From Azolla caroliniana (lineage: Eukaryota > Plantae > Polypodiophyta): a stretch of DNA of 64,000 nucleotides. A model generated the notes under the pieces. That model saw nothing but the letters and a program-made list of their open reading frames with translations. It was not told the origin of the DNA and did not search any database. Below, one piece after another: positions 3,450 through 63,843 of the stretch. Location of the stretch: assembly GCA_043228905.1 (NCBI GenBank), contig JBHGNT010000009.1, forward strand, positions 10,292,001 through 10,356,000, written 5' to 3'. The stretch's first letter is position 1. Each line of letters opens with the position of its first letter. A program made the translations under genes and the position numbers.

Positions 3450-3548
3450 TGTCATGAACAGTACTGAGACAGAGAAGGAATTAGTACTAAACGAAGGATT
3501 AGTACTATGAGAGGTGTGGAACTTCTTTGAGAGAAGGAAGAAGTGAGC

Positions 3549-3624
<76 letters not shown>

Positions 3625-3942
3625 TGATAAGAAAGATATGTATTATATGAAGAGAATATACAATGGTGGCTAAAAGGCTTAAGACTGGCGTTGAACCAAT
3701 TTGGTTCAACATAATGCCTAGTGCCCTCTTTTATAGTGTTTTCAGGAGTAATCCTGAAGCTTCTAGAATGTTCCAGAGAAATCTGGAATATACACTAATT
3801 TCCTATAATAAAATGTAAATGAAAATAATATTCTACGTATTACAATAGATGATCTAATGGTCATGAGCTCAACCCATATAACCTAAGGTCATGGGTTCGA
3901 GTCTTGCCATATCATGACACTATCTCCCCTTTAAAACGACGA
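3450..3942 (-). mobile_element. Chromovirus 3' LTR (variant A, 3450-3919) plus PPT stub, inverted
   Basis: Reverse complement runs TGTCATGATATGG...GTTCATGACA and is nearly identical to the LTR at 9279. Preceded on the minus strand by TCGTCGTTTTAAAGGGGAGATAG. Confidence 0.9.
3553..3621. repeat. (GA)n microsatellite inside LTR
   Basis: Long GA run, much shorter in the sister LTR at 9279. Confidence 0.95.
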
Positions 3943-4423
3943 TTCTTGTCATGATATGGCAAGACTCGAACCCATGACCTTATATTACATGGGTCGAGCT
4001 CTTGACCATTAGACTATACATTGTAATACATAGAATATTATTTTCATTTATGTTTTATTATAGAAAATTGATGTATATTCCAGATTTCTCTGGAACATTC
4101 TAGAAACTTCAGGAGTATTCCTTAGAACACTATAAAAGGAGGCACAAGGCATTATTTCGAACCAAATCGGTTCAACGCCAGTCTTAAGCCTCCTAGCTAC
4201 TGTACATTTTCTTCACATAATATATATCTTTTCTTACTCTCTCCCTCCCTCTCACTCACTCTTTCCTTCTCTCGAGAGTTCTTCACCTCTCTTAGTACTA
4301 ATACTTCTTTTAGTACTAATTCCTTCTCTGTCTTAGTACTATTCCTGACAGTTTGAACCGATTTACCTACCTTCTGTCTCTCTCATTTCCTACTAATCTC
4401 TTATTCCTCTTTTCTTTCATCCC

Positions 4424-5575
4424 ATGGCCACTGTTAGTGCTGAAGAATATCAATCTGTTTTCTCGGAATTTCAATGCTTGAAGGAGAAGTTCCATGCTTT
4501 GGAACAAGAAAACCGACGGTTGCTGGGGGATCTTCAGCAAATCTCCTTAGAAAAGCAGCAAACGCAACAACAACATGGGGAACTTGCGTTACGCGTGCAA
4601 CAACTCGAAGCAACCATCGTAGCGATGCAACAACAAGGGCCCGGAACACAAGGGATTCATAAAGAACCCAAGATTGGCCTTCCCACGAAGTTCGATGGAA
4701 CGCGATCGCAGTTTAGAGGGTTCCTTAACCAGGTACGATTAGTTATTCAAATGCATCCTTCCTGATATCCCACCGATGCATAACGAGTGGGTCTAGTAGG
4801 CACTTTGTTAAGTGGCTCAGCGTTGTCATGGTTCGCTCCACTATTAGAAAAGGAATCTCCGTAACTCAACAATTTTGAAGAGTTTCTAGGTGAGTTTAAA
4901 GCATGTTTCGGAGATACTGACAACATCAGGACCGCAATCAACAAAATCCGGCGATTACGCCAAGGTGACCTTCCAGCCTCTGCATACGCTGCAGATTTTC
5001 GTCTACTCGCCGCCGATATCCCTTGGGATGATCAAGCGTTGATGGAGCAATTCCATTATGGTTTACGCAATGACGTCAAGGATTTACTATTGACCTTCCC
5101 CGAAGAGCCAAAGTCCTTTACAGAAGTAATCAGTCGTGCAGTGAGATGTGACAACCGCCTCTTTGAGCGATGTTCGGAACGACAACTACAGATGCCGAGG
5201 GCAAGATCAGAGCCCACCTACGCCTCAGTGGTAGCAAGACCTTTTCCGAGGGAGTCATATAATGCGCCTCCAGCGAATACTCCGACTCCGATGGAGATTG
5301 ACACTACACGTCGTCGAGGGTCATTATCCGAAGAAGAAAAGCAGCGACGCCGTACAAATCGACTATGTCTTTACTGCGGTGGACCAGAACATATCGCAAT
5401 AAATTGCCCCCATAGGCCAAGAAGACAGGTAAACCAAATAGTCGCTAGTTCTAATTGTACTAAATCCGAGCCTATTTCAGTAGGGATATCTGATAGTCCT
5501 AATAGTACTAATATCCCAGATCTAGCAAACAAATTTGATGTCCTTAGTCAGTTAGAAGAAGAGTTAAACGACTAA
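4424..5575 (+). pseudogene. Chromovirus gag (PEG10/sushi-like capsid plus zinc knuckle) with premature stops
   Basis: PTKFDGTRSQFRGFLNQ, PTPMEID and CCHC motifs. In-frame stops at about 4763, 4781 and 4862. Confidence 0.85.
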
Positions 5576-8500
5576 GTCCAGCCAAAATAGGAGCCGTTTG
5601 GTTGGACAACCCTAGATCTGTGCAACCCATTAGTGGTTCCATTCCCTCTAAGCAAGTTAGTGATGTGTTCGTAGCCCAAGTAATAGTTAGTACTAAAAGT
5701 ACCCCTCCAGTACATGTCCTAGCACTCCTAGATTCTGGAGCTAACTCTTGCTTTATGGATAAGAAATTTGCTCAAGCTCATAAGATATCCCTAAGAAAAC
5801 TGCAGTGTCCAACCTCTGTAGTAGTCATTGATGGACGTCCCATTGCTTCCGGAAATATCATAGAAGAGTCAGAGCCCATTAATATTGTCCTAGATAACTT
5901 AGCATGTGTAGTATCATTTAATATTATTAGTATCCTAGAACATCCTATAGTTTTAGGATTATCGTGGTTCGAGTTACATAACCCAGACATAGATTGGAGA
6001 ACAAGAGAAATCCGGTGTCGACAAACCCAAGGCTCAACTCAGAAGATGGCAACCATTTCGCTACGTCAGCTGCGTAAAGAAGGGCGCAAGGAGGAAATGT
6101 TCCTCTTTGCAATATTAGTAAACCCCTCCAACACCACTAAAGAAGAATCCACCGTTCAACTTCCCGAGAAGTATCGTCATTACGCCGATGTGTTCGATAA
6201 AGTACAAGCCAACACACTTCCTCATCATCGACCGTACGATTGCCCCATCGATTTACAACCGGGAAAAGAGTCGCCATGGGGACCGATCTACAATTTGTCA
6301 CCAACCGAGCTGGAAGTTCTTCGGGCCTATATAGAGGAGAATTTGGAAAATGGTTTCATTCGGCATTCGAAATCTCCAACCGGCGCGCCCATTTTCTTCG
6401 TAAAAAAAAAAGATGGATCGCTTCGTCTCGTTGTAGATTACCGTGGCTTGAATAAGGTTACAATCAGGAATAGGTATGCTCTTCCCCTTATCTCAAGTCT
6501 TTTAGAACGGATCAATGGTGCCAGGTTCTTCACGAAGATCGACTTACGGGGAGCATATAACCTCGTACGGATCCGACCAGGAGACGAATGGAAGACCGCG
6601 TTTCGCACCAGATATGGGCCCTTCGAGTATACGGTCATGCCGTTCGGCCTCACTAATGCACCGGCAGTCTTCCATCACATGGCTAATGATATATTCCGAG
6701 ATCTATTGGATGATTGTTTGATCATCTATTTGGATGATCTACTGGTTTATTCAAAGACCCAAGAAGAACATGATTCTCATGTACTATTAGTACTAAAACG
6801 ACTTCGAGAACATGGTCTGTATGCAAAGTTGGAAAAATGTAATTTCGGGTGCAACCAAGTGGAATTTCTCGGCTACATCATTTCATCAGAAGGCATCTCC
6901 ATGGACCCAGCTAAGGTCAAAACGGTGGTAGAATGGCAGACTCCACGTTCGGTGCGGGATGTGTAATGCTTCCTAGGCTTTGCCAATTTTTACCAGAAGT
7001 TCATACAAGATTACTCAAAGATCGTTCTACCTCTCACACAACTTACCAGGAAGGGACAACCGTTCATTTGGTCTGAAGAAACGGACATGTCTTTCGAGAG
7101 TCTTAAAAAGGCATTTACATCGGCTCCAATTCTAGCTCATGTCGATCCGGAAAAACCATTCATTATCGAAGCTGACGCATCGGATTTTACATTGGGGAGC
7201 ATACTATCACAACAGGGGAATGATGAGAGGCTACATCCTGTGGCTTTTCACTCACGCAAGTTTGATGCCGCCGAAATCAACTACGAAATTCATGATAAGG
7301 AGCTATTGGCAATAGTGGATTCTTTTATGCAATGGAGGCATTTTCTGGAGGGATCCTCTCATCCGGTCACCGTATTTAGTGACCACAAGAATCTTGCCTA
7401 CTTTCAGGATGCTTGTGTGTTGAATCGACGTCAAGCTTGGTGGGCCCACTTCCTCACGCGTTTCGACTTCAAAATTACATATCGTCCGGGGAGGCACCAA
7501 GGGAAGGCAGATGCATTATCACGACCTTCGTATCTAGCACCCCGTCCCGGCGAGCCAGCTTTCGATAACCAAAAACAAGTCATCTTGGGACCGACACGAC
7601 TACAAGCAACACAGATCTTTGACATGCCTATGGATTCCCGCGTTATCGATACCATACGTGAAGACTTGAAGACAGATGCGTTCGCCCAAGCTATACTAGC
7701 ACAAATTGATCCCTCTCGAGCATCGTGTTCACAGTCACAACCACCAGGTACGGACTATCGGCAATTCAAATATCATGATGGATTACTCTTCTTTAAAGAA
7801 CTTTTGTATGTTCCTAATGGTTCTTGCCGCCTTTGAGTAGTACAAAATTGTCATGACACATATACAACTGGGCATTTTGGTAGTACTAAAACATTACATT
7901 TAGTACAACGAACATTCTGGTGGCCCTATATGCGACAATTTGTCGAGGATTTTGTTCGGACTTGTGATACATGTTGCAGAGCGAAAATGCCAAGGCATCA
8001 TCCATATGGTTTATTAGAACCATTACCAATTCCAAGCAAGCCGTGGCAATCCATTGCTCTAGACTTCATCACAGATCTTCCAGTCTCTAAGGGGTTCAAT
8101 GCGATTCTAACGGTGGTCGATCGATATACGAAGATGGCTCATTTCTTGCCATGTACTAAGGAGATCTCCAGTGAAGACACTGCCGAAATTGTCATGCGTG
8201 AAGTATGTCAGCATCATGGACTTCCCGATAGTATCATCAGTGACCGTGGACCCCAGTTCGTGTCAAAATTCTGGAAGCACCTTTTTAATGCTCAAGGTCA
8301 CTTGTAACCTCTCCTCCGGCTACCACCCACAAATCGACGGCCAAACTGAACGAACAAATCAAATGTTGGAGCAGTATCTACGGTGCTTTCTCAGCTATCA
8401 TCAAGATGACTGGGCAGATATTCTCCACTTCACCGAATTTGCCTATAACAACTCTATCCACGCATCCACTAAAGTTACGCCATTTTATGCTTATACGGGA

Positions 8501-9286
8501 TGTCACCCCCGGTGGAGTGTACTTGAAACCCCAGAGGTGTCCACAAATCCGTGCGCGGAGGATCGTTTGGAGCAGTTACGCAAGATACAAGCGGATTTAT
8601 CTACTCATCTCCAACAAGCTCAACAAACACACAAGGTCTACGCGGATCGTCATCGACTTCCATCCAGTTTTAATATTGGAGATTGGGTGTGGTTGCTACG
8701 ACGACACATCAAGACTACTCGTCCATGTGAGAAGTTAGATTATCGGCGATTAGATCCTTTCCGTATTATTGGACAGATTAATGATGTTGCTTTTCGTCTC
8801 GATCTACCTCCTCAACTTCGGATACATCCGGTGTTTCATAGTTCTGTCCTCGAACCCTACCACGAGAGCACCATCCCAGGACGTCTTATCCAACCTCCAC
8901 CCCCGATCGAGCTTGAAGATGGGCCGGACTACGAGGTTCCTCAACTTCGGATACATCCGGTGTTTCATAGTTCTCTCCTCGAACCCTACCACGAGAGCAC
9001 CATCCCAGGACGTCTTATCCAACCTCCACCCCCGATTGAGCTTGAAGATGGGCCGGAGTACGAGGTTGCCGCCATCCTTGATTCCAAGATTGTTCGCAAC
9101 AAGCTCTACTATCTAGTCGAATTGCTAGGCTATAGCCCCAGCGAACGTACTTGGGAACCGATCGAGAATGTGACCAATGCTCGTGCTCTTCTTGAAGACT
9201 TCCATCGTCAATATCCACACAAACCAGGTCCTCAATCCAAGACGACTCGTGACACTCGTCGTTTTAAAGGGGGGATAGTGTCATGA
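5563..9286 (+). pseudogene. Chromovirus pol (PR-RT-RH-IN-chromodomain), in -1 frame relative to gag
   Basis: ORFs 5602-6966, 7087-7836, 7930-8307 and 8171-9286 carry canonical motifs. Stops at 6964 and 7834, frameshift near 8285. Confidence 0.9.
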
Positions 9287-9680
9287 TATGGCAAGACTCG
9301 AACCCATGACCTTAGGTTATATGGGTCGAGCTCTTGACCATTAAATCATCTATTGTAATACGTAGGATATTATTTTCATTTACATTTTATTATAGGAAAT
9401 TAGTGTATATTCCAGATTTCTCTGGAACATTCTAGAAGCTTCAGGATTACTCCTGAAAACACTATAAAAGAGGGCACTAGGCATTATGTTGAACCAAATT
9501 AGTTCAACGCCAGTCTTAAGCCTTTTAGCCACCATTGTATATTCTCTTCATATAATACATATCTTTCTTATCATCACTCTCTCTCTTTCTCTCTGTCTCG
9601 CTCACTTCTTCCTTCTCTCAAAGAAGTTCCACACCTCTCATAGTACTAATCCTTCGTTTAGTACTAATTCCTTCTCTGTC

Positions 9681-9781
9681 TCAGGAACAGTACTAAGACA
9701 GAGAAGGTATTAGTACTAAAAGAAGTATTAGTACTAAGAGAGGTGAAGAACTCTCGAGAGAAGGAAAGAGTGAGTGAGAGG

Positions 9782-9825
<44 letters not shown>

Positions 9826-10882
9826 TGATAAGAAAAGATATATATTATGTGAAGAAAATGTACAGTAGCTAGGAGGCTTAAGACTGGCGTTGAACCGATT
9901 TGGTTCGAAATAATGCCTTGTGCGTCCTTTTATAGTGTTCTAAGGAATACTCCTGAAGTTTCTAGAATGTTCTAGAGAAATCTGGAATATACATCAATTT
10001 TCTATAATAAACATAAATGAAAATAATATTCTATATATTACAGTGTATAGTCTAATGGTCAAGAGCTCGACCCATGTAATATAAGGTCATGGGTTCGAGT
10101 CTTGCCATATCATGACACTATCCCCCTTTTAAAACGACGAGTGTAACGAGTCGTTTTGGATTGAGGACCCGGTTTGTCTAGATATTGATGATGGAAGTCT
10201 TCAAGAAGAGCACGAGCATTGGTGACATTCTCTATCAGTTCCCAAGTACGCTCGTTGGGACTATATCCTAGCCAATCGACTAGATAGTAGAGCTTGTTGC
10301 GAACAAGCTTGGAATCAAGGATGGCAGCAACCTCGTACTCAGGTCCATCTTCAAGCTCGATCGGGGGTGGAGGCTGTGTAATACGTCCTGGGATGGTGCT
10401 TTCTTGATAGGGTTCGAGGAGAGAACTATGAAACACCGGATGTATCCGAAGTTGTGGAGGTAGATCAAGACAAAAAGCGACATCATTAATCTTTCCGATA
10501 ATACGGAAAGGACCTAATCGCCGATAATCCAACTTCTCGCATGGGCGAGTAGTCTTGATGTGTCGTCGGAGTAGCCATACCCGATCTCCAATGTTAAAAC
10601 TAGATGGGAGTCGATGACGATCCGCATAAACCTTGTGTGTTTGTTGAGCTTGTTGGAGATGAGTAGATAAATCCGCTTGTATCTTGCGTAACCTCTCCAA
10701 ACGATCCTCTACGCAAGGATTTATGGACACCTCTGGGGTTTCAAGTACACACCACTGAGGGTGACATCCCGTATAAGCATAAAATGGCGTAACTTTCGTG
10801 GATGTGTGGATAGAGTTGTTATAGGCAAATTCGGCGAAGTGGAGAATATCTACCCAATCATCTTGATGATAGCTGAGAAAGC
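9681..10882 (-). mobile_element. Inverted chromovirus 3' LTR (variant B, 9681-10117) plus PPT and integrase/chromodomain fragment
   Basis: LTR matches 3947-4350. ORF 10110-10886 is homologous to the C-terminal part of ORF 8171-9286 but lacks the 43-aa duplication. Confidence 0.9.
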
Positions 10883-15110: not shown

Positions 15111-18100
15111 TACCGACCCTACTGGTTTTGTTTCTGACATGTTAAATCTTTCAAGAACTTTTGTAACATACTTCTCTTGTGACAACCATAACGCATTCTT
15201 AGTTTCGTCTAGAACTATGTGCATCCTCAAGATTTGTTAGACTGGTCCAAGATCTTTCATGGAAAACGACTTACCTAGTGCTTTCTCAAGCTCACAATCT
15301 TCTTAGTGTCTTGTCCGACCACTAACATGTCATCCACATATAGCATGAGAATCAAGAAGGCGCCTTCATTATACCTTTTGACAAACACACAGTGATAAAC
15401 TTGTGTTTTATGGAATCCATGTTCCAACATGAAGGATTCAAACTTCTTGTACCATTGGCATGGAGCTTGCTTTAGACCATACAAGCTTTTCTTCAGTCGA
15501 CACACTAGATTCGCTTTTCTTTTCTGTTGAGTGAGCAAGCTCAATCGGATCCGGATCGGCTGAATAAGCCAGAGCCGGATCGGTGTCCGAAACGGAGAGC
15601 TGTATCGGATTGAAACCGGTAGGCTGTTAGAGGCCTACGGATCCAACCTAGTACGTAGGCATAGTTTTTGGGAGTCAATACTTATTAGTTCTTTATGCAC
15701 TTGTATAAAAGTGCTTTTTGAGCACATTTTATGTACATAGAGGATTATTATTATTTAATTGAGTGTGTGTGCTGATGTCTCTATCTCTCTCGTGTATTCT
15801 TTGTGTAAGGTCTCCATTAAACCTTCTTCTCTACGTTCTCTTGGTATCCGACTGAGCCGGTTCGTTATACACTTTTGTATATTAACTTTCACATGGTATC
15901 AGAGCGCGAGGGTTGAGACTCCTCTGCAGTGGACATACGCTTTCAAAGACAAACCCTAACACCCAGTGAAGAACAGAAGAGAACCAAGATGGACAGAGGT
16001 ATGGCAAGTTTGCTTCCCACAAAAAGGTCGACCGGAGCAACTATGCATCCTGGTCATATAAAATGCACCAGTACCTACTAGGGCATGGTTACTGGAGTTA
16101 TGTGGAAGGAACGAACAATGTAGCGCCAGAGCTGACACACAAGGACTTCCCGACATGGGAATAAGGAGCGAGCAGAGTGTTGTACTACCTTGCATCCTGT
16201 GTGCACGATCAGATGCTCGACTACATCAAGGATGCAAAAACGCCAAAGTAAGCTTGGGAAAATCTTCGGAAGATTTTCGCCACAAGTACCAAAGCCCGTA
16301 AGTTGCAGCTCCGACAAGAGCTAAACAACATCTGGTAGAGAGATATGTCGGTTACAGAGTACACCACCAAAATAAAGGAGATTTGTGACGCGCTTGGGTC
16401 CATCAATGTGGCGGTGGATGAAGACAAAATAGTACAAATCTGCCTTGGTGGTCTAGCACAACGATACGGGCCAGTCCGGAAGGAGATCTGCACTAGGGAG
16501 AAGCCACTGTCCTTCTTCGACCTGCAATCGATGCTGATGGTCTAAGAAAACCACGCAAGTGGGTCGAGGACCACTCAACCAAACAACCAGATGTTGCACA
16601 TGGAGGAGAGCGGCCCCGTGGGCGTGTAGGATGAGGTGGGTCGGCACGCAGTGGAAGTGGCTAGCAAGAGCAAAATTGAAGGCATGGAAACAGTGCCGAA
16701 AGTAGTTCTGGACCCTCCACAAGCAAGAGGAGTCAAAACAGCGCTGAAAATCGGTAAGGGAAGGCCGACACAGAATGCTAGTATTGTGGCAAGAAGGTCA
16801 CAGAGAAAGCGAGTGCTGGAAGAAGCGCGTTGATTCAGACAAATACAAATCTGGCAAGGCCGGATAGGGAAACCGACAAAGCTCACACTATACGCAGAAG
16901 GATCAGAAGAATCCGGATTCGGGAAAACCGGAAAGGGTCCAACCTTTGTGATGAAGCACAAGGCTAACTCGATGAAGAAGACTACTTCCAAAGCGGAGGA
17001 AATATGGTATGTTGATTCCAGAGCCTCAAACCACATGATGACCCACGAAGAGTGGTTCTCGATTTTGGAGAATCCGGAACAACCGGGAATCGTCGAAACC
17101 GGAGATGACACCCCTCACCCGATTGTGCATGTCAGAGAAGTCCCCTTAAGCTATGTTGGACAAAAGGGAAAGCTGATGAACGTACTACATGTTTCGACAA
17201 TCACAAAGAAATTGGTGTCGGTCGAACAAATGGTCAACCAGGGAATGCAGATGTGATTTACACACCTCAAGTGCTTCATCGAGGAAGAAGGCCGGATAAT
17301 TGCGCAAGGGCGCAAAGACGTAAGGATGTTCATCCTCGACACCAACGACGTCGACACCACCTTGTTTGCCAAAGGACAAAAGACCGAATCAGATATCAAT
17401 CTCTGGCACAAGCAGATTGGCCACCGGAGGCTTCGAGACTTGCAATCGAAATAGGTTGTTCTCGGATTGCCGAAATTCAGTGGCTGGAAGGCACAAATAT
17501 GTGAAGCCTGCCAACTCGAAAAGCAACACCGGCTTCCATTCCCCACCAAACAAAACCGGAGCCGTAACAAGCTCGACTTAATCCATTCGGATGTATGGGG
17601 ACCATAGAACGTTAGGCTTGGCGGGAGTCGGTATTTCGTCTCCTTCATCGACGACTACAGCCCGCCAGCACACATGGATCTACCTCATTGAGAGGAAAAG
17701 TGAAGTCTTCAACTCTTTCCGAAATCTACAAAGCCTAGTTGAGAGGGAAACATAATACTTTTCCGGCTAGATGCATGGCGGAAAAGAATACTTTTCCAGC
17801 CAGTTCAACAATTATCTGCAGCAAAAAGGAATTCGGAGAGAATTCAGCCACCGATACACACCGGAAAAAAAACGGTGTGGCCGAGAGAAAGAACCAGTTA
17901 ATTGTTGACATGGCAAGGGAAATGCTGGAGGAGAAGAGCATGCCCAAAATCTACTAGGCTGAGGCGGTCTGGACGGCCATCTACATCCAAAACTGGATTA
18001 GAGACAAGGTGTCAGCACATGAGTTGTATTTCGGGCGGAAGCCGAATTTGAGACACCATCGGATATTCGGTAGCATAACATATGTGCATGTACCGGATGA

Positions 18101-24574: not shown

Positions 24575-25251
24575 AACAACAATCTTGGCGAGAGAAAACC
24601 CTCCTTCGTTCTTCGACCTTCAATCAATTTTATTGGTTAAAGAGAACCACATCCAAACCAAGAGTAAGAAGTCTGAAGAACAAATGTTCTTCTCGAATTC
24701 GGATGGTGGCCGAGGACAAGATTGTGGCAATAGAAGAGGTTAATTTGGCCCATCTCACGAAGGGAACTCAAACCTTTGACAAGAAAATGGAAGCCATCAA
24801 GGAACCTTCGGAAGAAGGGGGAGATTCCATGCGGAACAAGGTCAGCAAACCATGCTACGTACCTGCAAATATTGTGGAAAGATCGGTCATCGCGAAGATG
24901 AGTGCTGAAAGAAAAGAAGTGAGTCGGCTTCCACAAGCCGACAACTCACAAACTACGCCACCAACTCCAAATACGACAACTATGGTGGATTGTTCGTAAT
25001 GAGACATAGAGCGAACTCTCTGTTAGCCTTCGACTCCACAAGCACCTCCAACTCAAAAGACGTGTGGTTCGTCGACTCCGGCGCCTCACATCATATGATG
25101 TCACACATAGAGTGGTTTTGTGAATTAAGAAGGCGGGATCAACCCGACTACATAGAGACGGGAGACAACATCACATATCCTATTCGGCACATTGGCAATG
25201 TTCCATTCGGCAAGGATGGTGAAAACAATTGCATTAACAATGTCTTGCATG

Positions 25252-27114
25252 TGTCACATTCTAGACATGAACCTCTGACTTTTAACACACACACATTACA
25301 TTGTGTTGTGTTAACCATATGGAAACTCTTGTGAATTGTCCACATTCGATTGTGAACTTGTATATATTGTAGAGTCTAGTGTATAGTACATTCGAGAATA
25401 TTCTAGTCGTTAGTATATTCTAGAATTATTCTATGGTATATTCTAAACGGGTATATCGAGATATTTCTCGAGTATATTCTAGAGATATTCAATTTCGGAA
25501 ATTGTATAAATACTTGTAACATCCTTGGTCCCTTTCAAAGGATTCAACACCAGTCATTGACACATCAATCTAGTATTCTCGTTTTGCCTCATCTTTGTCT
25601 CCTTGATCATTATTTCTGTCTTCATGCCCTCATGGCGCTCACAACATCTAGAGTTCCTAGCCTCGTCACATCTAGCTCCAAGTTCATTCGTCGATCGTAG
25701 CCCCATCACATGTGCTCCGTCCAAGTCCACGCTTGGTGTGTCCATGACAGTTTGAATCCCTTCCAACTGGGAGCACTACTCGTCTTTGTCATCGTCTTTG
25801 CTTCTAGAGTTACCATCATCACCCTCCTTGCTTCCGGAGTTACTAGCATCAACATCCTTGTCTTCTACGTCATCATTTTCATCACCTCTTTGCCCAACCA
25901 TTGTCGTCATCAACACTACTTGTCATCATTTTTAGGTATCATTTTGCATCACGGTTTTGGTGAGGAGTGCTTTCGATTGCTCACCTTCCCAGTTCCGGTG
26001 GGGGTCACAACCGCTCACTTTTCCTGGTGGGGATCGGATCATTGCGTGCTTGCACTGCATTTTCGCTATAGTTCAAGTCTCGCGCCACTTTCTGTTGGCG
26101 AGGAACGATTTTGATCGCTCACCTTCTAGTTTCGGTGGGGGTCACAACCGCTCACTTTCCTAGTGGGGATCGCGTGGGTTTCTCGCTAGCGCTATCGTTT
26201 GTGCCGTGTCTTGGGTCAACCTTGACTATTTACCCTCTCATAATAGAAGTCGAGTCGACCGCTTCACTTGCACTACTTTGTCCGTTCGTGTTCCAGTTCT
26301 TGGTGAGGGTCGCATGGTCGCTCACGCCCGTTCATGTTCAATTCTCCGTGAGGGCCGTATGGTCGCTCACCAGTTCTCGGTGAGGGCCCCATGGTCGCTC
26401 ACATCCGTTCGTGTTCCAGTTCTCGGTGAGGGTTGCATGGTCGCTCACGCCCGTTCGTGTTTTCGATGAGGACCGCACATGGTCGCTCATGTTCCAATTC
26501 CCGATGAGGGCCACAAATGGTCGCTCACTCCTATTCGTGTTCCAGTCTCCGGTGAGGACCGCACATGGTCACTCACTCCCGCTATTGTTCTTGTTCTAGA
26601 TCCCGACGAGGACCGACATAGTCGCTCATGCCTGCTATTGTTCATGTTCCAGTTCCCGGTGAGGACCACGCATGGTCACTCACACCCGTTGGTGGCTGTG
26701 TTCCAACTCTCCGCAAGGACCGACATGGTCTCTCATGCCCGTTGGTGTTTGTGTTCCAGTTCCCGACGAGGACTGCACATGGTCACTCATGCCCATTGGT
26801 GTTCGTGCTCCCCATGAGTACTGCACATGGTCGCTCACGCCCGTTGGTATTCGTGTTCCAATCCAGGGTGAGGACCGCACATGGTCACTCATGTCCCTTT
26901 CAAGGGATTCAACACCAGTCATTGACACATCAATCTCGTATTCTCGTTTCGCCTCATCTTTGTCTCCTTGATCATTATTTCTGTCTTCATGCCCTCATGG
27001 CGCTCATAACATCTAGAGTTCCTAGCCTCATCACATCTAGCTCCAAGTTCATCCGTCGCTCGTAGCCCCATGATTTGTGCTCCGTCCTAGTCCGCGCTTG
27101 GTGTGTCTATGACA
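25252..27114 (+). mobile_element. Non-autonomous LTR element with internal tandem array and U3-less 3' LTR
   Basis: 5' LTR 25252-25749; partial 3' LTR 26893-27114; TSD GCATG/ACATG; no recognisable coding domains. Confidence 0.8.
26280..26892. repeat. Degenerate ~40-50 bp minisatellite (GAGGACCGCACATGGTCGCTCACGCCCGTTCGTGTTCCAGTTC-like)
   Basis: More than ten recognisable units. Confidence 0.9.
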
Positions 27115-29343
27115 ACATGTTCCTACAATAACAAAGAAGTTGGTCTCTCTTGGCCAAATCATGAAGCAAGGCATGCAAGTCCGTTTCAAGAATGGAGGAT
27201 GCTTTATGGAAAAAGATGGCCGACTCATAGCTAGGGAACGGAGAGACGGCTGAATGTTCATTCTCGATTCAAACGAGGTAAAATTAGTCATGTATGCCAA
27301 AGGTCTCAAAACCGAGACGAACATCGAGTTGTGGCACAAGTGAATCGGCCACATCAATCTCCAACAGCTTCGAGTTATACAATCAAAAGGAGTCGTCATC
27401 AGACTTCCGGCCTTTGAGTCAAAACAAGTCTACTGAATGTGTGAAGCGTGTCAACTCGACAAACAATATCAACTCACATTCCCAAAGGAGAGCTCCGTAA
27501 GCAAAGGCCTCCTTGACGTAGTCCACTCGGATGGATGGGGGGCCGGCTCAAACGCCGACGATCAGCGGATGCCGATACTATGTTACCTTCATCAACGACT
27601 ACTCCCGCTACACATGGATCTTCCCGATGAAGAAGAAGTGTGAAGTGCTCTCACACTTCCAAAAGCTCAAGAGTCAAGTCGAAAAAGAAACCGGTCGGCT
27701 ACAAATTGAGCTTGTTATCTCAAAACTTCCATGGAAGCCTTAGTCCCCCGTTTTATTGTGTGTAGCACATGATTTATTTTACTATCTTTTCCTCCAACAT
27801 GTCCTAACATTACAAATGTTTGGTTTCTTCTATGGTGACCTAATGGTTGCATCAAATTGTCCAACCTACCAAAGCATCTACATTCTCTCTCCCTCTGCCC
27901 TTGTTTGACTTGCAAGAGTAGAGCAATGAAGATACTTTGTCAATGCCTCCCAAATCATAGACCCAATTCAACGATGTTTCTCTAACTCTTTGGATTGTGT
28001 AGATCTTGCTTTCTTTTTTTAACCACACAATGCCCATTAGGAGTCAGGTTTTGTCCTATTTCTTAACTTCCATTGATGTGCTTCTCATGGTTCCCTTTGT
28101 GGAGTTGTTCTTGTTATAGGTCCCAAACATGTGACCACTTTCACAATAGGTACTAATCATGCATTGATTGCCATTGGTTCATCTCACTACTTGAGCACTT
28201 TTGGTAGGCCATGGAGAAAGAAGCACACCCTATACGAGTTTACCATCAACCACAACATCATCATGCAAGGCCAAATTCACCTTGCCTGATTGTTTATAAA
28301 CTACGGTGATTCAATTATTTGTTAAATAATTAGTCAATCCATCAATCTTATGAGGTGGGCTCATTCTGTTTCCTTCTTTACCTTGAGATATTTTACCAAG
28401 AAAGGAAACATTTGCCAACAGAATTGAATACTTTTTTACCATTGAACTAGTAGTTTTTCAACCTATCGTGCATAGTAACCATGAGATGGAAAACCATTTG
28501 CTCTGATTGATGTTTCATGTGGAGGACATAAGACCTTCAAGCAACAATGATTAAATAAAAAATTTAAGAGAACATGGGCCAAACCATCTAACTGGTTTGC
28601 AATATAAGGAGGGGATAGCAAATGTGATTTATAACTTTAAGATACCATAGTTACACAACTTAGAAATAGAGACATAATAGGATGTCGCCTAAACAGATTC
28701 CAGTAGTTGTTCTATAATAACCACAAGTGTCATAACCATTGTAGCTTCAATGGAATAGCTAAACATTTGAACTTATCATGTAATAGCCAAACATTGTAAC
28801 TTTTCAGTTCAATATGGATCATTTTAATTAGTTTTGGTTTCAAGCATTAAACATCTATCATTCAACAACTGAAAGAAAGCAGCATTATATATAAATAGCT
28901 ATTAAGTAAGACAACTACATCCCTGGAGTGCATTGACATGCCTCCAATGTTTATCCAGTTAAAACAAATCAGATTCTTTCTCTGAACATAAGTGCATAAA
29001 AAATATCTTTTACTTATGGAGAGTTGACATATGACTACATTGTAAGTGACCTCATTAATCGAGAGGCAATATATACTCAAATAACCAGCAAAAGAGATTG
29101 CCAGGGTTACATCATTGTTCAAGCAATTTCCGATTTAAAAACATAGGACGTAGCAAAATCTCTGATCGATGTTGCCTATGACTTGAACAATGTAGAGGTC
29201 GTATATGTGCTTTGGAGGTAAGCGAAGGAATCATCTTGATCCATGGATCAAACATATAACAATTCGCCCAAACCATACAGAGTTGTCTATTGCACAACTT
29301 TACTTGATTGGAAGAAAGTAAGTACTATGTAAATTAAAATCTT

Positions 29344-30601
29344 TCAAAAGAATGGAACAAGCTCTACTGCCTGGACTGCCATATGCCTAATGACATCCGG
29401 CCGTTGTTTCCCGTACATCCTAATGCATTCATCCCTAGCTAGTTGCACAAGCACAGACCTATATTCTGGATCAGGTGACATTGTAGCTAGCATTACTGCG
29501 AATGTCACAGTGCGGAGAAACCCTGGCACAGTCTCGTACATGGCAAGAACAACCTCCATAGCTGTTGAGTTTGCAAATTCTTCTGGCTCCTTGAAGTCTC
29601 TTGTATACCCTGAGGTAAGAAAATTAGCTAGAAAAGCATTTGAATAGCCCCCTAAAATCCATTGTTTTTCTTGTTTTGTCAGATGTGTCAGTGTATCAAG
29701 CTTCCTCTTCACCTCAATGAAGATACTGGCGAGCTTTTTGCTTGCTGGGAATGGACCTTGGGCTCTGGTAGTTGCAACAGAGTAGACCTCCTCTGCAGCC
29801 TTATCATAGTGCTCAAGATAGGAGTCTGATAACTGTTGGAGCTCGGGTTCGAGCATTTTCTCTAAGACACACCTCTCACAGTTGCAATTGAATCCCCCAC
29901 CAGTCCGAATGAGTACCTTATCCCGCTTCCTCAAGGGAGACATGCAATCAGTATAACAAATGCTTATCTCTTCATTTGCTTTCATGGCTTTTGCAGCAAT
30001 AAAAATCATAACTTCTCCAACCAAAAGACGGCCCACATTCGGGCTACATGAATGGTTTACGAACGAGGGAAGAAGCCAAAGTGCATTGATTTTCGATTCT
30101 AATTCAGGCTCACTTCTGGGGGCCGGGATTTTCCCAGAAAATGAGTTTGTTATGATTATATGCTTGATTCGAGCTTCATCAAAAGCCATATCCTCATTTT
30201 CTTCCTCATTGAGGGAGAAAAACTCAGAATCGCTGACTTTCTGGTCAAAAAGCTCAACTTTCGGCACATTATGAACATGGTGGCTGTGATGATGCTTTTC
30301 TACTGACCCCGCCAACGAATATAGCTGGCGCAGTGCCCTTGGCGAGGACTTCACAATCGACATGACTTTATCATACATTTCTCGATTTCCATCATCGTTG
30401 TATGCGGCCGAAAAGGCATTGCTAGCAATGAGGATTTGTCCTACAGAGACGTCTTCTGTGAGAAAGAGACCCCTGCCGCGGCCATCTCTTGTTAGGCCGA
30501 TCCGTAAAGGGCCGATAAAGTCAGGAATCTTGGGTGCCTTTCGATAATCAGCCCCGGAAAGGAGATATTGGGATAGATCGATAGTCTCGCAAGATGCTTC
30601 A

Positions 30602-30643
<42 letters not shown>

Positions 30644-30762
30644 GCATACAAAGAAGAAGAAGATGAAGAAGAAGAAGAAGAAGAATACCTTAAGGTAGAC
30701 CTGATATAGTTTATCGATCTGTTATTCCACAGAGAGGCGGTTCGAAGCTGAAGAAGAAGCAT
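29344..30762 (-). CDS. Intronless SET-domain lysine methyltransferase (ATXR1/SDG35-like) with N-terminal poly-Ser extension
   Basis: 472-aa intact ORF. Motifs GRGRGLF, NHSCSPN, EEISICY and post-SET FNCNCERC. Confidence 0.85.
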
Positions 30763-59164: not shown

Positions 59165-61364
59165 AAAGTTATCAAATTGTACAACAAATCATTCCATTTT
59201 ATAAATAAGGTTGTGGAACAGCTTGTTTCATATGGCTTATCAGCATTGTCCTCCCACCATTTGGCTTTGTACAATGCTTTTATGTCTTCCAGCTACAATA
59301 ACCTCTGGGGTTAGCATCAATATAATCACTGTATTCTTCCTCCATACAGGACATTGTAAGATTTTCATTTGATTAGAGTATCTGTTTGCATTAGGGTATC
59401 AATTCCCAGCGTTCTTGTATTTAAAGCATCCCCTTTGGTTGTACATCAAAGTTCATTTTGTCACAATTTTGGGTCTATTGTATCAAAACGAAATATTTTA
59501 GTGTAAAGAGTATTTTTTTTCTTTGAATGAGCAAGACACCCAAAGTAACTACTTGCACAGAAAATATATCTATTGCCAGCTTTGTGAGGATGTGAATTTT
59601 AGTAAAATTGGAAATTTGTTTGATTGGATAATAAGGTAGCCCTTCCGCCTTGTGTTTGGATCCATCTGTTGATAGTACTTGATTGCCATGGCATGTTAAA
59701 AATTGTGTTGGAAATACTAGGGTTGCCATCAAAGTTTTGGATGAGGTCAACAGTCACATGAGTAGTGCCATACAATACAATATCTTACAAAGTCATCAAT
59801 AAATTTTGGATGAAATGATTTGTAGTTAAGTCATACCACGTTAAAGTTTATCATATTACAAGGCCAAGGCTAGTTTCACAAGTCTTGGAAGGTGGATGTG
59901 GTGCTGATATTGATAAATGATTGGCAACAATAAGGTAACATTGCAAAAAGTGTTGAGATTCACACATGTTGGCATCATGCTTTGTGAATTTGAACTCTCA
60001 TGCGATTGATTATCACATGATTTTTTTTTGGACCTTCCATGATTTGACAACACTTTGATAGGTATGTGTTTGCTTTGTGAACCAAGTCTAATATCTTAAA
60101 GGAATGCATCACGCATGGTTTATGAGTATCTATTTTAAATATATGGCACAAACAAGTTATAAAACTTCTTTAATTTGCATTTGGTGAGGTATAAATGAGA
60201 GTAATTACCAAAAACCAATGAAAGCAACAATCATGTATGTAGAAATGGACAAAAATGCTATAACGCTTTTGTTAGCTTGTGTGGTTCTAGAAATTTGCCT
60301 TGAAGATTTCTAGTTTGTTTTTATGCATGCCACTAGATTTTGTCGTCCCTTTATATTACATGAAACCTCAAGACAACAGTAGATATTATGGCTATCTAGA
60401 CTCTCTTGAGCACATGGATGTCCATGGATTGCTGATTTAGTATATAGCCAATTGATTGTTGTACAAGACAAGAAAAAAGGAGCTTCCATGAGGGTAGGTA
60501 GCCCCTAATGGGCCATGGATTCCTCTGTCTATTTATGCCAAGAAAACAATCATCTCATGCTTGGCCATGAACCAATGAATAAGCCCCTCGATCTATGTCT
60601 TGCCTATCCACTTTTGTATGGCAAACCAATTGAATGATGGGGCGTTGCAACAAATCAAATGCTTTTTAGAGAGCCTCGTCTCACCGACCAACAATATCAC
60701 ATTGAACATGAGAATCAATAGGCTAGTTAGTACAATCTAGATGGGCCGCAAGAAGAGACATCATCATCACAACTACACTAGTAACCGTCGAACCCTTATG
60801 ATATATATAATATATCGAACTTATAGTGATTCCACATGAAGGAGCATCGTAAGGGAGTTGAATTTGTTCAGTCCACACGGAAGTAGCAATATCACGTTAC
60901 GTTGGGGAAGTGAGGAAAGGCGTTTGCGTAATGCTGAGTTGGGTCAAGAAATGTGTAATGTATATGTATGTACATCGATCCATGAGGAGGGAGGGTGCAA
61001 AGATGTTTATGGAGGAGAAGGAGAGATTCAATTGAGACCACCTGCAATTCCATTCATTCCTTATATTATTAATTATGTATTATTATTATTATTATTATTA
61101 TTTGTCCTTCCCTCCCTTTCTTATTTCCTTTTTGTTATCACGCCAGAAAACCAAATTTAGGGTTAGTTATTTTAGGCTTTCTTGCAGAGCTCGCCATCGC
61201 CAGTGGAGCAGACATATCATACGGACACGCAGATTGACGATCCGATCCGATCCGATCCGATCCGACCCGACCTTCTCCTCCTCCTCCTCCTCCTCCTTCT
61301 AACACAGGTGTGTACACATTCTTTCTTCTACTTCTCCTTCGTCTTCAGAGTGTTTGCACCGCCC

Positions 61365-63843
61365 ATGGATGTCCTTTCGGCCATCGATTCTCTCTCTGAG
61401 AGACGGGAGAGGCTTCGTACAGCTTTCTCTGCGCTCGAATGCAAGCAAAACGCCATGATTCTGAGCAATTTCGGGGCGAATTGGAACGATGTGGAAGTTT
61501 ACCTCAATGAGGTTGAGAAACGTCTGCGTGTTTCTCTGCTCGACATCGTTTCAAAAGAAACGTCCATTAAAGAGAGAGAGCGAGAGGCCAAGGAGGCTCT
61601 CGCGGAGAGAGAAACGGGCATTTCTCGGAGAGAGCAAGCTTCACTTGCTCTCGTCCAGGAGAAGAAGGATGCTGCGGTTGCAAGCATCCTTGAGGCGAAA
61701 CGTAAATGGAATAATGAGCAGTGGAGAGATGAAGAAGGGGAGGAGGAGGAAGAGAAAGGTAAGAAGAAGGGGAAAAAGGAAAATGAAAAACAAAAGCAAA
61801 ACGAGAAGGTGAATGAAAAGCAAAATCAGAAGGAGGAGATTGAAAATGGAAAGCAAAAACAAAAAGAAGAGGAGGAGAAGAAAAAGAAGAAGGAAACTGA
61901 AAGAGAGAGAGAGAATCTAGTGCAAAAACAAAACGAGAAGAAGGAGATGGATGACAAAAGCTGTATAAACACAAAACCTTCAAAGGTGGATGAGGGAGTG
62001 GAGGAGAAAAGCTTTAAGAAAACGGAAACTTTGAAAGCTGAGGAAGTGGAATGTGATGATGAGAAGCATGTTCAAAGAAGAAGAAGGGAGGAGGAAATCT
62101 TTGCTAAAAAGGAAGCTTTAAAGGCTAAATCTGACAACAATAAACCACATCAAAACTCAATTGCTGGTACCCAAAATCACTTATCTTTGGATGTAGATGC
62201 CACGTCTAATGCTGAAAAGCCAGCCTTTAATGGTAAGGTACTCAGTCTCAGTGGCCTTCTTACAAAAGAGGCAAATAGCACATCGGTTGATGAGGTTCTA
62301 AAGCCTCGGCCAATGTTGAAATCCTTGTGCGAGGCTATGGACTCAGAAAAATTAAGGATTTTTATTGCTGATCGGCGCAAGGACCTAAATGGTATCAGTG
62401 CCGAGCTTCCTTTTGCACTAAAATCTGCACCACATCCTGCAGTACTAGTGCTCAAAGCCTTGGAAGGCTATCATCCTCCCGAGGGCCAGAGTTCTGTCTC
62501 AGTCCTGAAGAAGGAAGCTTCTTCTCTATTACTTGCTAATAAGCGAGCCTGTGTGATATTATTGGAATCACTTGCCGATGTGATGAAGGATAGAGATGAG
62601 CTTTCAGAAGAATTGAAGAAGTCAGCTCAGCGGATTGCTGACTCCTGGAAGTCTAAGATCAACTTGCAAGTTGACTTGACTTCCAATCAAGCTATCGAAG
62701 CTCAGAGCCTTTTGCAACTTTTGGCAACTTTTGGTCTGGCTTCGGAATATGACCCTGATGAGCTTTGCAAGCTTGTTATTCCCATCACACGGCGTAGGCA
62801 GACACCCTCTCTTTGCCGAACCCTTGGTTTGTCATCGAAAGTTCCAGGTTTGTCCTTTGTCGTGACAAAGCACAATCTGATGCTTTGCTTTTAAAAAACA
62901 AAGCTGTCTGCCTATTTGTATCAGACTTGATCATGTTGGAGCGCAATAATGCATTCTTCTTTGGCTATTTTCTTGGAAAATAGTTATTGTTTTGTTTGAT
63001 TTGTGTTTTCATTGTTGTCGAATTGTGCATTTTTTATTATCTTATATTTATTTATATATTTATATATTATGTTTGAGTGGCAGATATTATTGAGAGACTC
63101 ATAAAAGATGGGAAACAAATCGAGGCCATTGCTTTTGCTACTGAATTCGATCTTTTGGAGAGGTTTCCACCAGTTCCATTGCTAAAGACATATCTAAAGG
63201 ATTCTCGGAGAGTTGTCCAGAACACACCGAAGGGTCAGGTAAGAATTCCTGCACTCATGATTTTGTGTACAAAGTCATTGCTTAAGCAGACTAATTATGA
63301 ATTGATAATTATAATGACCCACAGAATGATGCTAATCACAAGGAGTTATCAGCACTAAAGGTTGTTTTGAAGGCAATAAATGATCTGAAGCTTGAAGAGA
63401 AGTATCCATCGGCACCACTTGAAAAAAGAATTGCACAACTAGAGAAAGCAAAGGCAGACAAAAAACGTACGGCTGGTACAGCCAGACCACAACAAATGAA
63501 AAGACCTAGAACAAATGTTAACTTCGGTAGTACTTCAAGAGATATGGTTCATGATAAGCCTTTCTATCAAGGAAGAGTTGCATATGGAGAACCTGTTTTA
63601 CCTTACAATGCAACAACCACCCACACTGGTTATGATCGTCATCTTTTAAATGGTTACAGTTCTACATATGCTGGTGGTGCACCTAGAAGAAGCCCTGTTT
63701 CAATGCAAAGCTCATATATCTATCCTTCTGATGCTATTGCTTCTCTTGGTTATGGATCATCAGCGTATGCTAGTACTAATGCACCATATAGTAGTTATGC
63801 CTATGGTTCTGGTTTACCATCTGGGTACCAATCATATCACTAA
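61365..63843 (+). CDS. FRL: FRIGIDA-like protein
   Basis: Exons 61365-62847, 63084-63238 and 63325-63843. Motifs LCEAMD, PAVLVLKALEGY, RACVILLE, EAQSLLQLLATFG, FPPVPLLKTYL and LEKRIAQLEKAKADKKR; Tyr/Ser-rich tail. Confidence 0.88.

Follow-up and report, generated by a model that had tools for sequence, protein, structure and literature searches.

In the 64-kb window, by which we mean the whole stretch of DNA that was analysed and whose positions supply all coordinates given here, the element at 25252-27114 (family 2) is in all probability an old copy, no longer active, of a protein-less, self-priming LTR retrotransposon family that is high in copy number and would be helped in trans by a chromovirus of the Tf1/sushi/Tcn1 type. 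The evidence is the anatomy of the element, the complementarity between the start of its R region and its primer-binding site (PBS) together with the conservation and covariation of that pairing, the absence of coding capacity, the abundance of the family, and the affinity of the reverse transcriptase (RT) of a neighbouring chromovirus at 3930-9680 (family 1).

Results

A gene-less LTR element inserted in a copia pol gene

The block at 25252-27114 is a 1863-bp non-coding LTR element lying inside a copia pol gene. Its excision along with one 5-bp duplicate restores an unbroken copia pol frame (..NNVLH followed directly by VPTITKK..), and the host copia ORF matches Pfam Pol_BBD. The left target-site duplication, GCATG (25247..25251), falls in this host ORF and is matched at 4/5 positions by the right one, ACATG (27115..27119); these and all features of the element described below are given on the plus strand. 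The 5′ LTR (25252..25749, 498 bp) has the ends TGTCA...TGACA, and contig L008, an intact relative, matches 25252-25692 at 96.6%. Its putative U3, which contains short TATTCTAGA-type repeats, is placed at 25252..25536 because of the TATA position and the start of the complementarity. A TATA box, TATAAATA, is found at 25505..25512, and the putative self-primer AAAGGATTCAA, the predicted first 11 nt of the RNA, occupies 25537..25547. It is followed by the 5′ arm of an extended R helix (25549..25568), whose 3′ arm (25733..25751) consists of the U5 end and a 2-nt spacer, GT. The putative PBS, TTGAATCCCTT, lies directly beyond at 25752..25762 and is the complement of the element's own R start. The internal region (25763..26892) is non-coding and includes a decayed array of ~46-54-nt tandem repeats (26282-26893), detected by TRF. 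The element ends in a truncated 3′ LTR (26893..27114), which carries a second copy of the self-primer, AAGGGATTCAA, at 26902..26912.

No interior ORF gave a Pfam match, the longest being 145 aa and lying within the tandem repeats; a tblastn search of the element with family 1 proteins found nothing, and an Rfam search with a permissive threshold returned no match. Folding shows no unusual structure in the tandem-repeat region (z = -0.5). Two interior copies of a unit (25957-26010 and 26095-26150) contain a PBS-like TTGCTCACCTTCC and, ten bases past it, GGTGGGGG followed directly by TCACA, which resembles a polypurine tract and LTR start; these units may be what is left of an earlier, minimal PBS-PPT interior.

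The 3′ LTR was truncated after integration

The repeat shared by the element ends comprises only 25528-25749 and 26893-27114 (222 nt, 94% identity), and the 3′ "LTR" is therefore R-U5 only. The two copies differ at 13 of the 222 nt, 8 of these differences being transitions (K ~0.06). What the sequence-only reading had called the 3′ copy does contain the primer, but it is not a whole LTR, since the 276-nt U3 is absent. In contig L008 the intact order is the tandem array, ~142 nt, the polypurine tract AAGAGGGGGGATAA, and then TGTCAC and U3, from which it follows that the window copy lacks ~419 nt, including the polypurine tract and the 3′ U3. The deletion junction shows short microhomology (G and CCC), and in none of the other copies, on 37 metagenome contigs, does the tandem array abut R. 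In the established retroviral strand-transfer scheme, a new insertion receives its 5′ U3 as a copy of the 3′ U3. Because the 5′ U3 derives from it, the 3′ U3 had to exist at integration, so that its loss is later and an origin of the gap during reverse transcription is ruled out. The 3′ "LTR" stump, with ~419 bp apparently lost after insertion, is new here. The window copy is old and inactive and cannot itself propagate.

The PBS is complementary to the start of R

Immediately past the LTR end at 25749 (..CATGACA) stands GTTTGAATCCCTT, as the sequence-only reading had it, in which the spacer GT (2 nt) precedes the PBS. This 11-mer is the reverse complement of the primer copy in the 3′ R at 11/11 positions and of the one in the 5′ LTR at 10/11, in agreement with the earlier description of a perfect match in the former and one mismatch in the latter. 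The TATA box precedes the first paired base by 32 nt; the spacing of ~30 nt originally proposed thus stands, whereas the start of the box is 25505 rather than 25506. In the window the frame GACAGTTTGAA is present at exactly two places (4347 and 25746), the ends of both LTR families, and TTCAAC[G/A]CCAGTC at exactly six, all within LTRs of families 1 and 2, which bears out the earlier observation that both families share a PBS frame and TTCAAC in R.

Inverted 10-mers within 900 nt of each other are common in this repeat-rich window (~125 pairs), as would be expected if the complementarity were a chance inverted repeat. The match is nevertheless fixed at LTR end +2 and TATA+32, and even without a constraint on position relative to the TATA box, an exact 11-mer complement in the preceding 498 nt at offset +2 was found for only 0.2% of 20,001 random window positions (1.3% with ≤1 mismatch), both rates being computed before the TATA+32 position is demanded. 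With recurrence in four families that have different cores, chance is effectively refuted, and we regard its probability as negligible.

A conventional primer must also be considered. The PBS resembles the sense strand of the tRNA T-loop (GTTTGAATCCC vs GGTTCGAATCC, which we take to be the T-loop consensus), so that a tRNA or half-tRNA with a fortuitous likeness to the R start might be imagined to serve as primer. This likeness is of the same polarity as the tRNA, however, and hence offers no pairing between PBS and tRNA. Moreover, a tRNA-type PBS is absent next to the 5′ LTR, where GTTTGAATCCCTTCC is found without a TGG start, ARAGORN finds no tRNA in the window, and the PBS cores differ among sister families and R changes along with them, for which a host tRNA primer gives no reason. 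A tRNA primer of this kind is accordingly very improbable. Because a canonical tRNA-iMet PBS, TGGTATCAGAGC, does occur at 15894, after the LTR of another family (window 15682-15905), the putative self-priming appears as a trait of the lineage and not of the genome as a whole.

The R start and U5 end form an extended helix with covarying cores

In folds that begin at the predicted start, the first 11-12 nt pair with the PBS in the minimum free energy (MFE) and the centroid structure of both families alike. The family 2 duplex consists of 11 nt and then an unpaired C, after which the helix resumes through the AC/GT spacer, GUCAU/AUGAC of the LTR end and 10 more pairs, such that in all ~32 nt of R pair with the U5 end. 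Both arms are indicated by the folds and by duplex energies, and the 3′ arm also by the alignment described below; a modelled pairing that reaches ~32 nt is new here. Pairing with the 5′ R yields a duplex of -30.8 kcal/mol (shuffled sequences, -9.9 +/- 2.8) and pairing with the 3′ R one of -35.7, against a shuffled background of ~-10 +/- 3 that never came as low (0/2000). Taken as a whole, the family 2 R-U5 fold is no more stable than shuffles (z = -0.01), the terminal helix alone standing out; the family 1 fold has z = -7.1. Among 14 aligned R-to-PBS stretches, 93.7% of the cells of the 28 helix pairs are paired, a figure somewhat flattered because the structure was taken from one aligned row, versus ≤43% with the partner slid. 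Four helix pairs are altered on both sides, which was reached by 1 of 500 shuffles.

The extent of this helix, well past 11 nt and like that of retroviral leader structures, would suit a structural RNA signal for packaging, dimerisation or translation control, with the element using another primer, e.g. a tRNA fragment pairing elsewhere. We consider this unlikely, though less so than a tRNA primer at the PBS: the paired block occupies the very place required of a PBS, 2 nt past the LTR; no tRNA-type PBS follows the LTR; and in four families, whose cores covary, pairing begins at the predicted first base of the RNA. The use of the R start as primer remains our preferred reading.

Families 1 and 2 differ at three primer positions, and all three differences are compensated in the PBS, which sustains the argument from covariation against chance that had been made when only the two families of the window were in view. 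Core 1, AAATCGGTTCAA / TTGAACCGATTT, is that of family 1 (window 4164 and 4353), and core 2, AAGGGATTCAA / TTGAATCCCTT, that of family 2. Core 3, AAGGTGAACAA / TTGTTCACCTT, represents a subfamily and is assembled from separate molecules, the primer from loose contig ends in two runs and the PBS from contig L024, where the LTR preceding the variant PBS has the standard primer (7/11); this contig may be collapsed or chimeric. Core 4, AGCAGATCAA / TTGATCTACT, pairs at 9/10 in L042, an old metagenome chromovirus copy and the only one of the close RT relatives L038-L042 in which a 5′ LTR/PBS is present. A common geometry unites the four families or subfamilies: TATA, 32-33 nt, CA step, primer, LTR end, 2-nt spacer and PBS. 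In all four cores pairing ends exactly at the C before the first A, 32-33 nt past TATA. Plant transcripts tend to start at a CA step, and the C-A pairing boundary fits such a start site. The natural compensatory changes represented by the four cores suggest selection on pairing between the 5′ end and the PBS.

One seeming further family, 'GACA GT TTGGGCCTGCT' (L010, L015), has no upstream complement and was judged to be coding sequence. Separately, loose contig ends before 25781 (runs X4 and X2, from organisms B and A) suggest more PBS variants, ..TTCAATCCCTT.. and ..TATACCTT.., for which no matching primers turned up.

The complementarity is conserved in a very abundant family

A metagenome scan with a 22-mer from R, the primer core being deliberately left outside it, yielded 37 plant-like contigs. 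TATAA stands 37-42 nt before CAAC in 35/42 R copies, and AAGGGATTCAA is kept in 33/42, although these conservation counts are non-independent, many of the fetched copies being closely related. At the 12 junctions of 5′ LTR and PBS that were fetched, pairing is 11/11 in seven and 9-10/11 in four more, partly with G-U pairs (L006, 10 + one G-U; L017, 10; L018, 9; L036, 9 + two G-U); junction L024b, from a high-coverage contig that may be collapsed, has 7 pairs. The sequence-only reading had proposed that other copies be examined for the complement and for its distance from the TATA box, and on both counts its expectation holds: the complementarity is conserved, and the distance is fixed rather than random.

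In three public DNA runs from two organisms, 7,700-9,700 contigs each match the element at ≥85% likeness, and family 2 is therefore very high in copy number. Position 25539, where the window copy has A, reads G in ~99% of read depth (96 contigs, best run), so the mismatch is private to the window copy; judged from these reads, nearly all other copies should pair 11/11 at this place. Our search of public runs turned up no RNA run containing the element, and one presumed-RNA run held six diverged contig pieces with no usable start. Contigs L008 and L022 are intact, with the polypurine tract and a full 3′ LTR present.

Two peculiar arrangements were seen among the contigs. In L013 (oriented, ~1435-1437; equivalent to window 25571-25732) the entire R-U5 loop is lost while the helix arms are kept with few bases between them, which could record a jump of reverse transcriptase over the helix base or be an ordinary deletion. 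In L024 (LTRs near 941-1154, 2662-2863 and 3908-) and L022 (first 50 nt plus two LTRs), LTR-interior-LTR-interior arrays share LTRs, and the second interior of the L024 array has a different PBS core; either true tandem recombination or collapse during assembly could account for them (coverage 14-20x vs ~2x).

A neighbouring chromovirus as candidate helper

The neighbour at 3930-9680 is a coding chromovirus with protease, RT, RNase H, integrase SH3 and chromodomain, the C-terminal SH3_Tf2-1 and Chromo domains of its integrase lying within 8171-9286. Its self-primer (4164..4175, plus strand) begins 33 nt after a TATA at 4131, and its PBS (4353..4364, plus strand) is 2 nt past the LTR end. Family 1 RT is 57-68% identical to RTs of frog, lizard and fungi (basidiomycetes and a mucoralean), compared with 36-51% for seed-plant and algal chromoviruses. 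The RT tree puts it on the side of fungal and vertebrate Tf1/sushi-type elements and separates these from seed-plant chromoviruses with 100/99 support, the name of the group resting on taxon distribution in a tree without a labelled Tf1 or Tcn1 reference. This distribution is that of the Tf1/sushi/Tcn1 group (PMC6317226).

Family 1 and the intact copies of family 2 have in common a polypurine tract and LTR start, A(A/G)AGGGG(G/A)GGATA(A/G) followed directly by TGTCA, and the two families also share the TGTCA/TGACA ends, the GT spacer, the TTGAA frame of the PBS and the R motif. These shared cis signals are what a gene-less element would need in order to use such a helper in trans. The sequence-only reading had also proposed to identify the autonomous partner and to place its RT in a tree with Tcn1/Tf1. 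The placement described above is that of the neighbouring autonomous family. An autonomous element with the exact family 2 core was not recovered among 37 loci; tblastn with family 1 proteins led there only to unrelated neighbouring fragments, and contig L029 has the PBS and no recognisable protein. The broader proposal of that reading, a lineage of self-primed elements that includes non-autonomous members, is supported, family 2 being devoid of protein domains and family 1 coding.

In the four LTRs of family 1 at this locus, the R primers differ by CG>TG or CG>TA (AAATCGG, AAATTGG, AAATTAG), as expected of methyl-C decay. About 10-25 nt into U3 there is an antisense stretch that looks like the 3′ part of a tRNA, with a T-loop-like GGTTCGAGTC or GGTTCAAGTCC (3943-3985 and 9279-9320; L038 4303-4355; L022 2000-2050), and in family 1 and L038 it ends in ..GCCA.

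Discussion

We propose that RNA polymerase II would start transcription of family 2 at the A of the CA step, 32 nt past the TATA box, and that the first 11 nt of the resulting RNA would fold back onto the PBS, 2 nt past the 5′ LTR, while the ~32-nt helix of R start and U5 end may help to hold primer and PBS together. A helper chromovirus, of the Tf1/sushi/Tcn1 type, would then supply the RNase H that cuts after nt 11, and the freed 3′ end would prime minus-strand DNA. Relatives such as the chromovirus at 3930-9680 could provide Gag, RT and integrase in trans.

This scheme follows that of fission yeast elements. Tf1 primes with its first 11 bases, RNase H cutting between bases 11 and 12 (PMC7175516), and Tj1 of S. 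japonicus was read like Tf1 (PMC4600332). Like the predicted RNA start of family 2, the first ~11 nt of Tf1/Tf2 (Schizosaccharomyces pombe) and of Tj1 are complementary to a PBS close behind the 5′ LTR; in both cases a tRNA PBS is lacking and additional RNA structure surrounds the duplex (PMC7175516, PMC4600332). In contrast, Tf1 is autonomous and its mechanism is experimentally proven, whereas family 2 is gene-less and resides in a plant, its RNA start and cleavage being predicted. Among surveyed plant elements, 12% are likewise predicted to self-prime, these being the Tcn1 clade of moss and club-moss and TAR copia (PMC6317226). The Tcn1-clade chromoviruses, a REXdb class, are Tf1/sushi-related plant elements with predicted self-priming (Neumann et al. 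2019, PMC6317226). Family 1 resembles them in its PR-RT-RH-IN-chromodomain order and in an RT that groups with fungal and vertebrate elements, in a tree from which a labelled Tcn1 reference is absent. The clade has been described from mosses and club-mosses, and a PCR survey obtained no Tcn1-like clones in ferns by 2010 (Novikova et al. 2010, PMC2864245); family 2, on the other hand, is a non-coding derivative.

In its LTRs, PBS, polypurine tract (in intact copies), 5-bp target duplication, lack of gag/pol and high copy number, family 2 is similar to LARD and TRIM elements, and it shares cis signals with an autonomous family, as gene-less and autonomous pairs share PBS and PPT. It departs from LARD and TRIM in a length of ~2.3-2.4 kb with ~490-bp LTRs, which belongs to neither size class, and in having a self-primer PBS instead of a tRNA site. 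Our full-text literature search found no description of non-autonomous self-priming LTR elements.

The mechanism itself is not new, and the modest additions made here are the gene-less state, the long helix and the covarying set of cores. It is a tentative but serious possibility that family 2 represents the first documented protein-less LTR retrotransposon family bearing a self-primer, with copies numbering in the thousands in two or more fern-type genomes, from a plant group that gave no Tcn1-like elements in the PCR survey, and with cores (four seen) that diversify in lock-step as a possible family-specific match code. Because the cores change in lock-step, they could be such a code, keeping each RNA priming only on itself. 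With family 2, tRNA-independent self-priming, proven only in fission yeast, would reach a gene-less element that is very abundant in a non-seed plant. In annotation, families of this kind, which may form a visible share of large fern genomes, will escape or be misclassed by LTR finders that demand a tRNA PBS.

Additional features of the window

The chromovirus is flanked by inverted family 1 LTR copies (3450-3930 and 9690-10130, minus strand), with a U5-to-U5 junction at 9680. Long ORFs encode a Frigida-like domain (61182-62894, plus strand), which marks the host as a plant, and a SET domain (29344-30762, minus strand), and these are probably host plant genes or gene fragments situated among the repeats.
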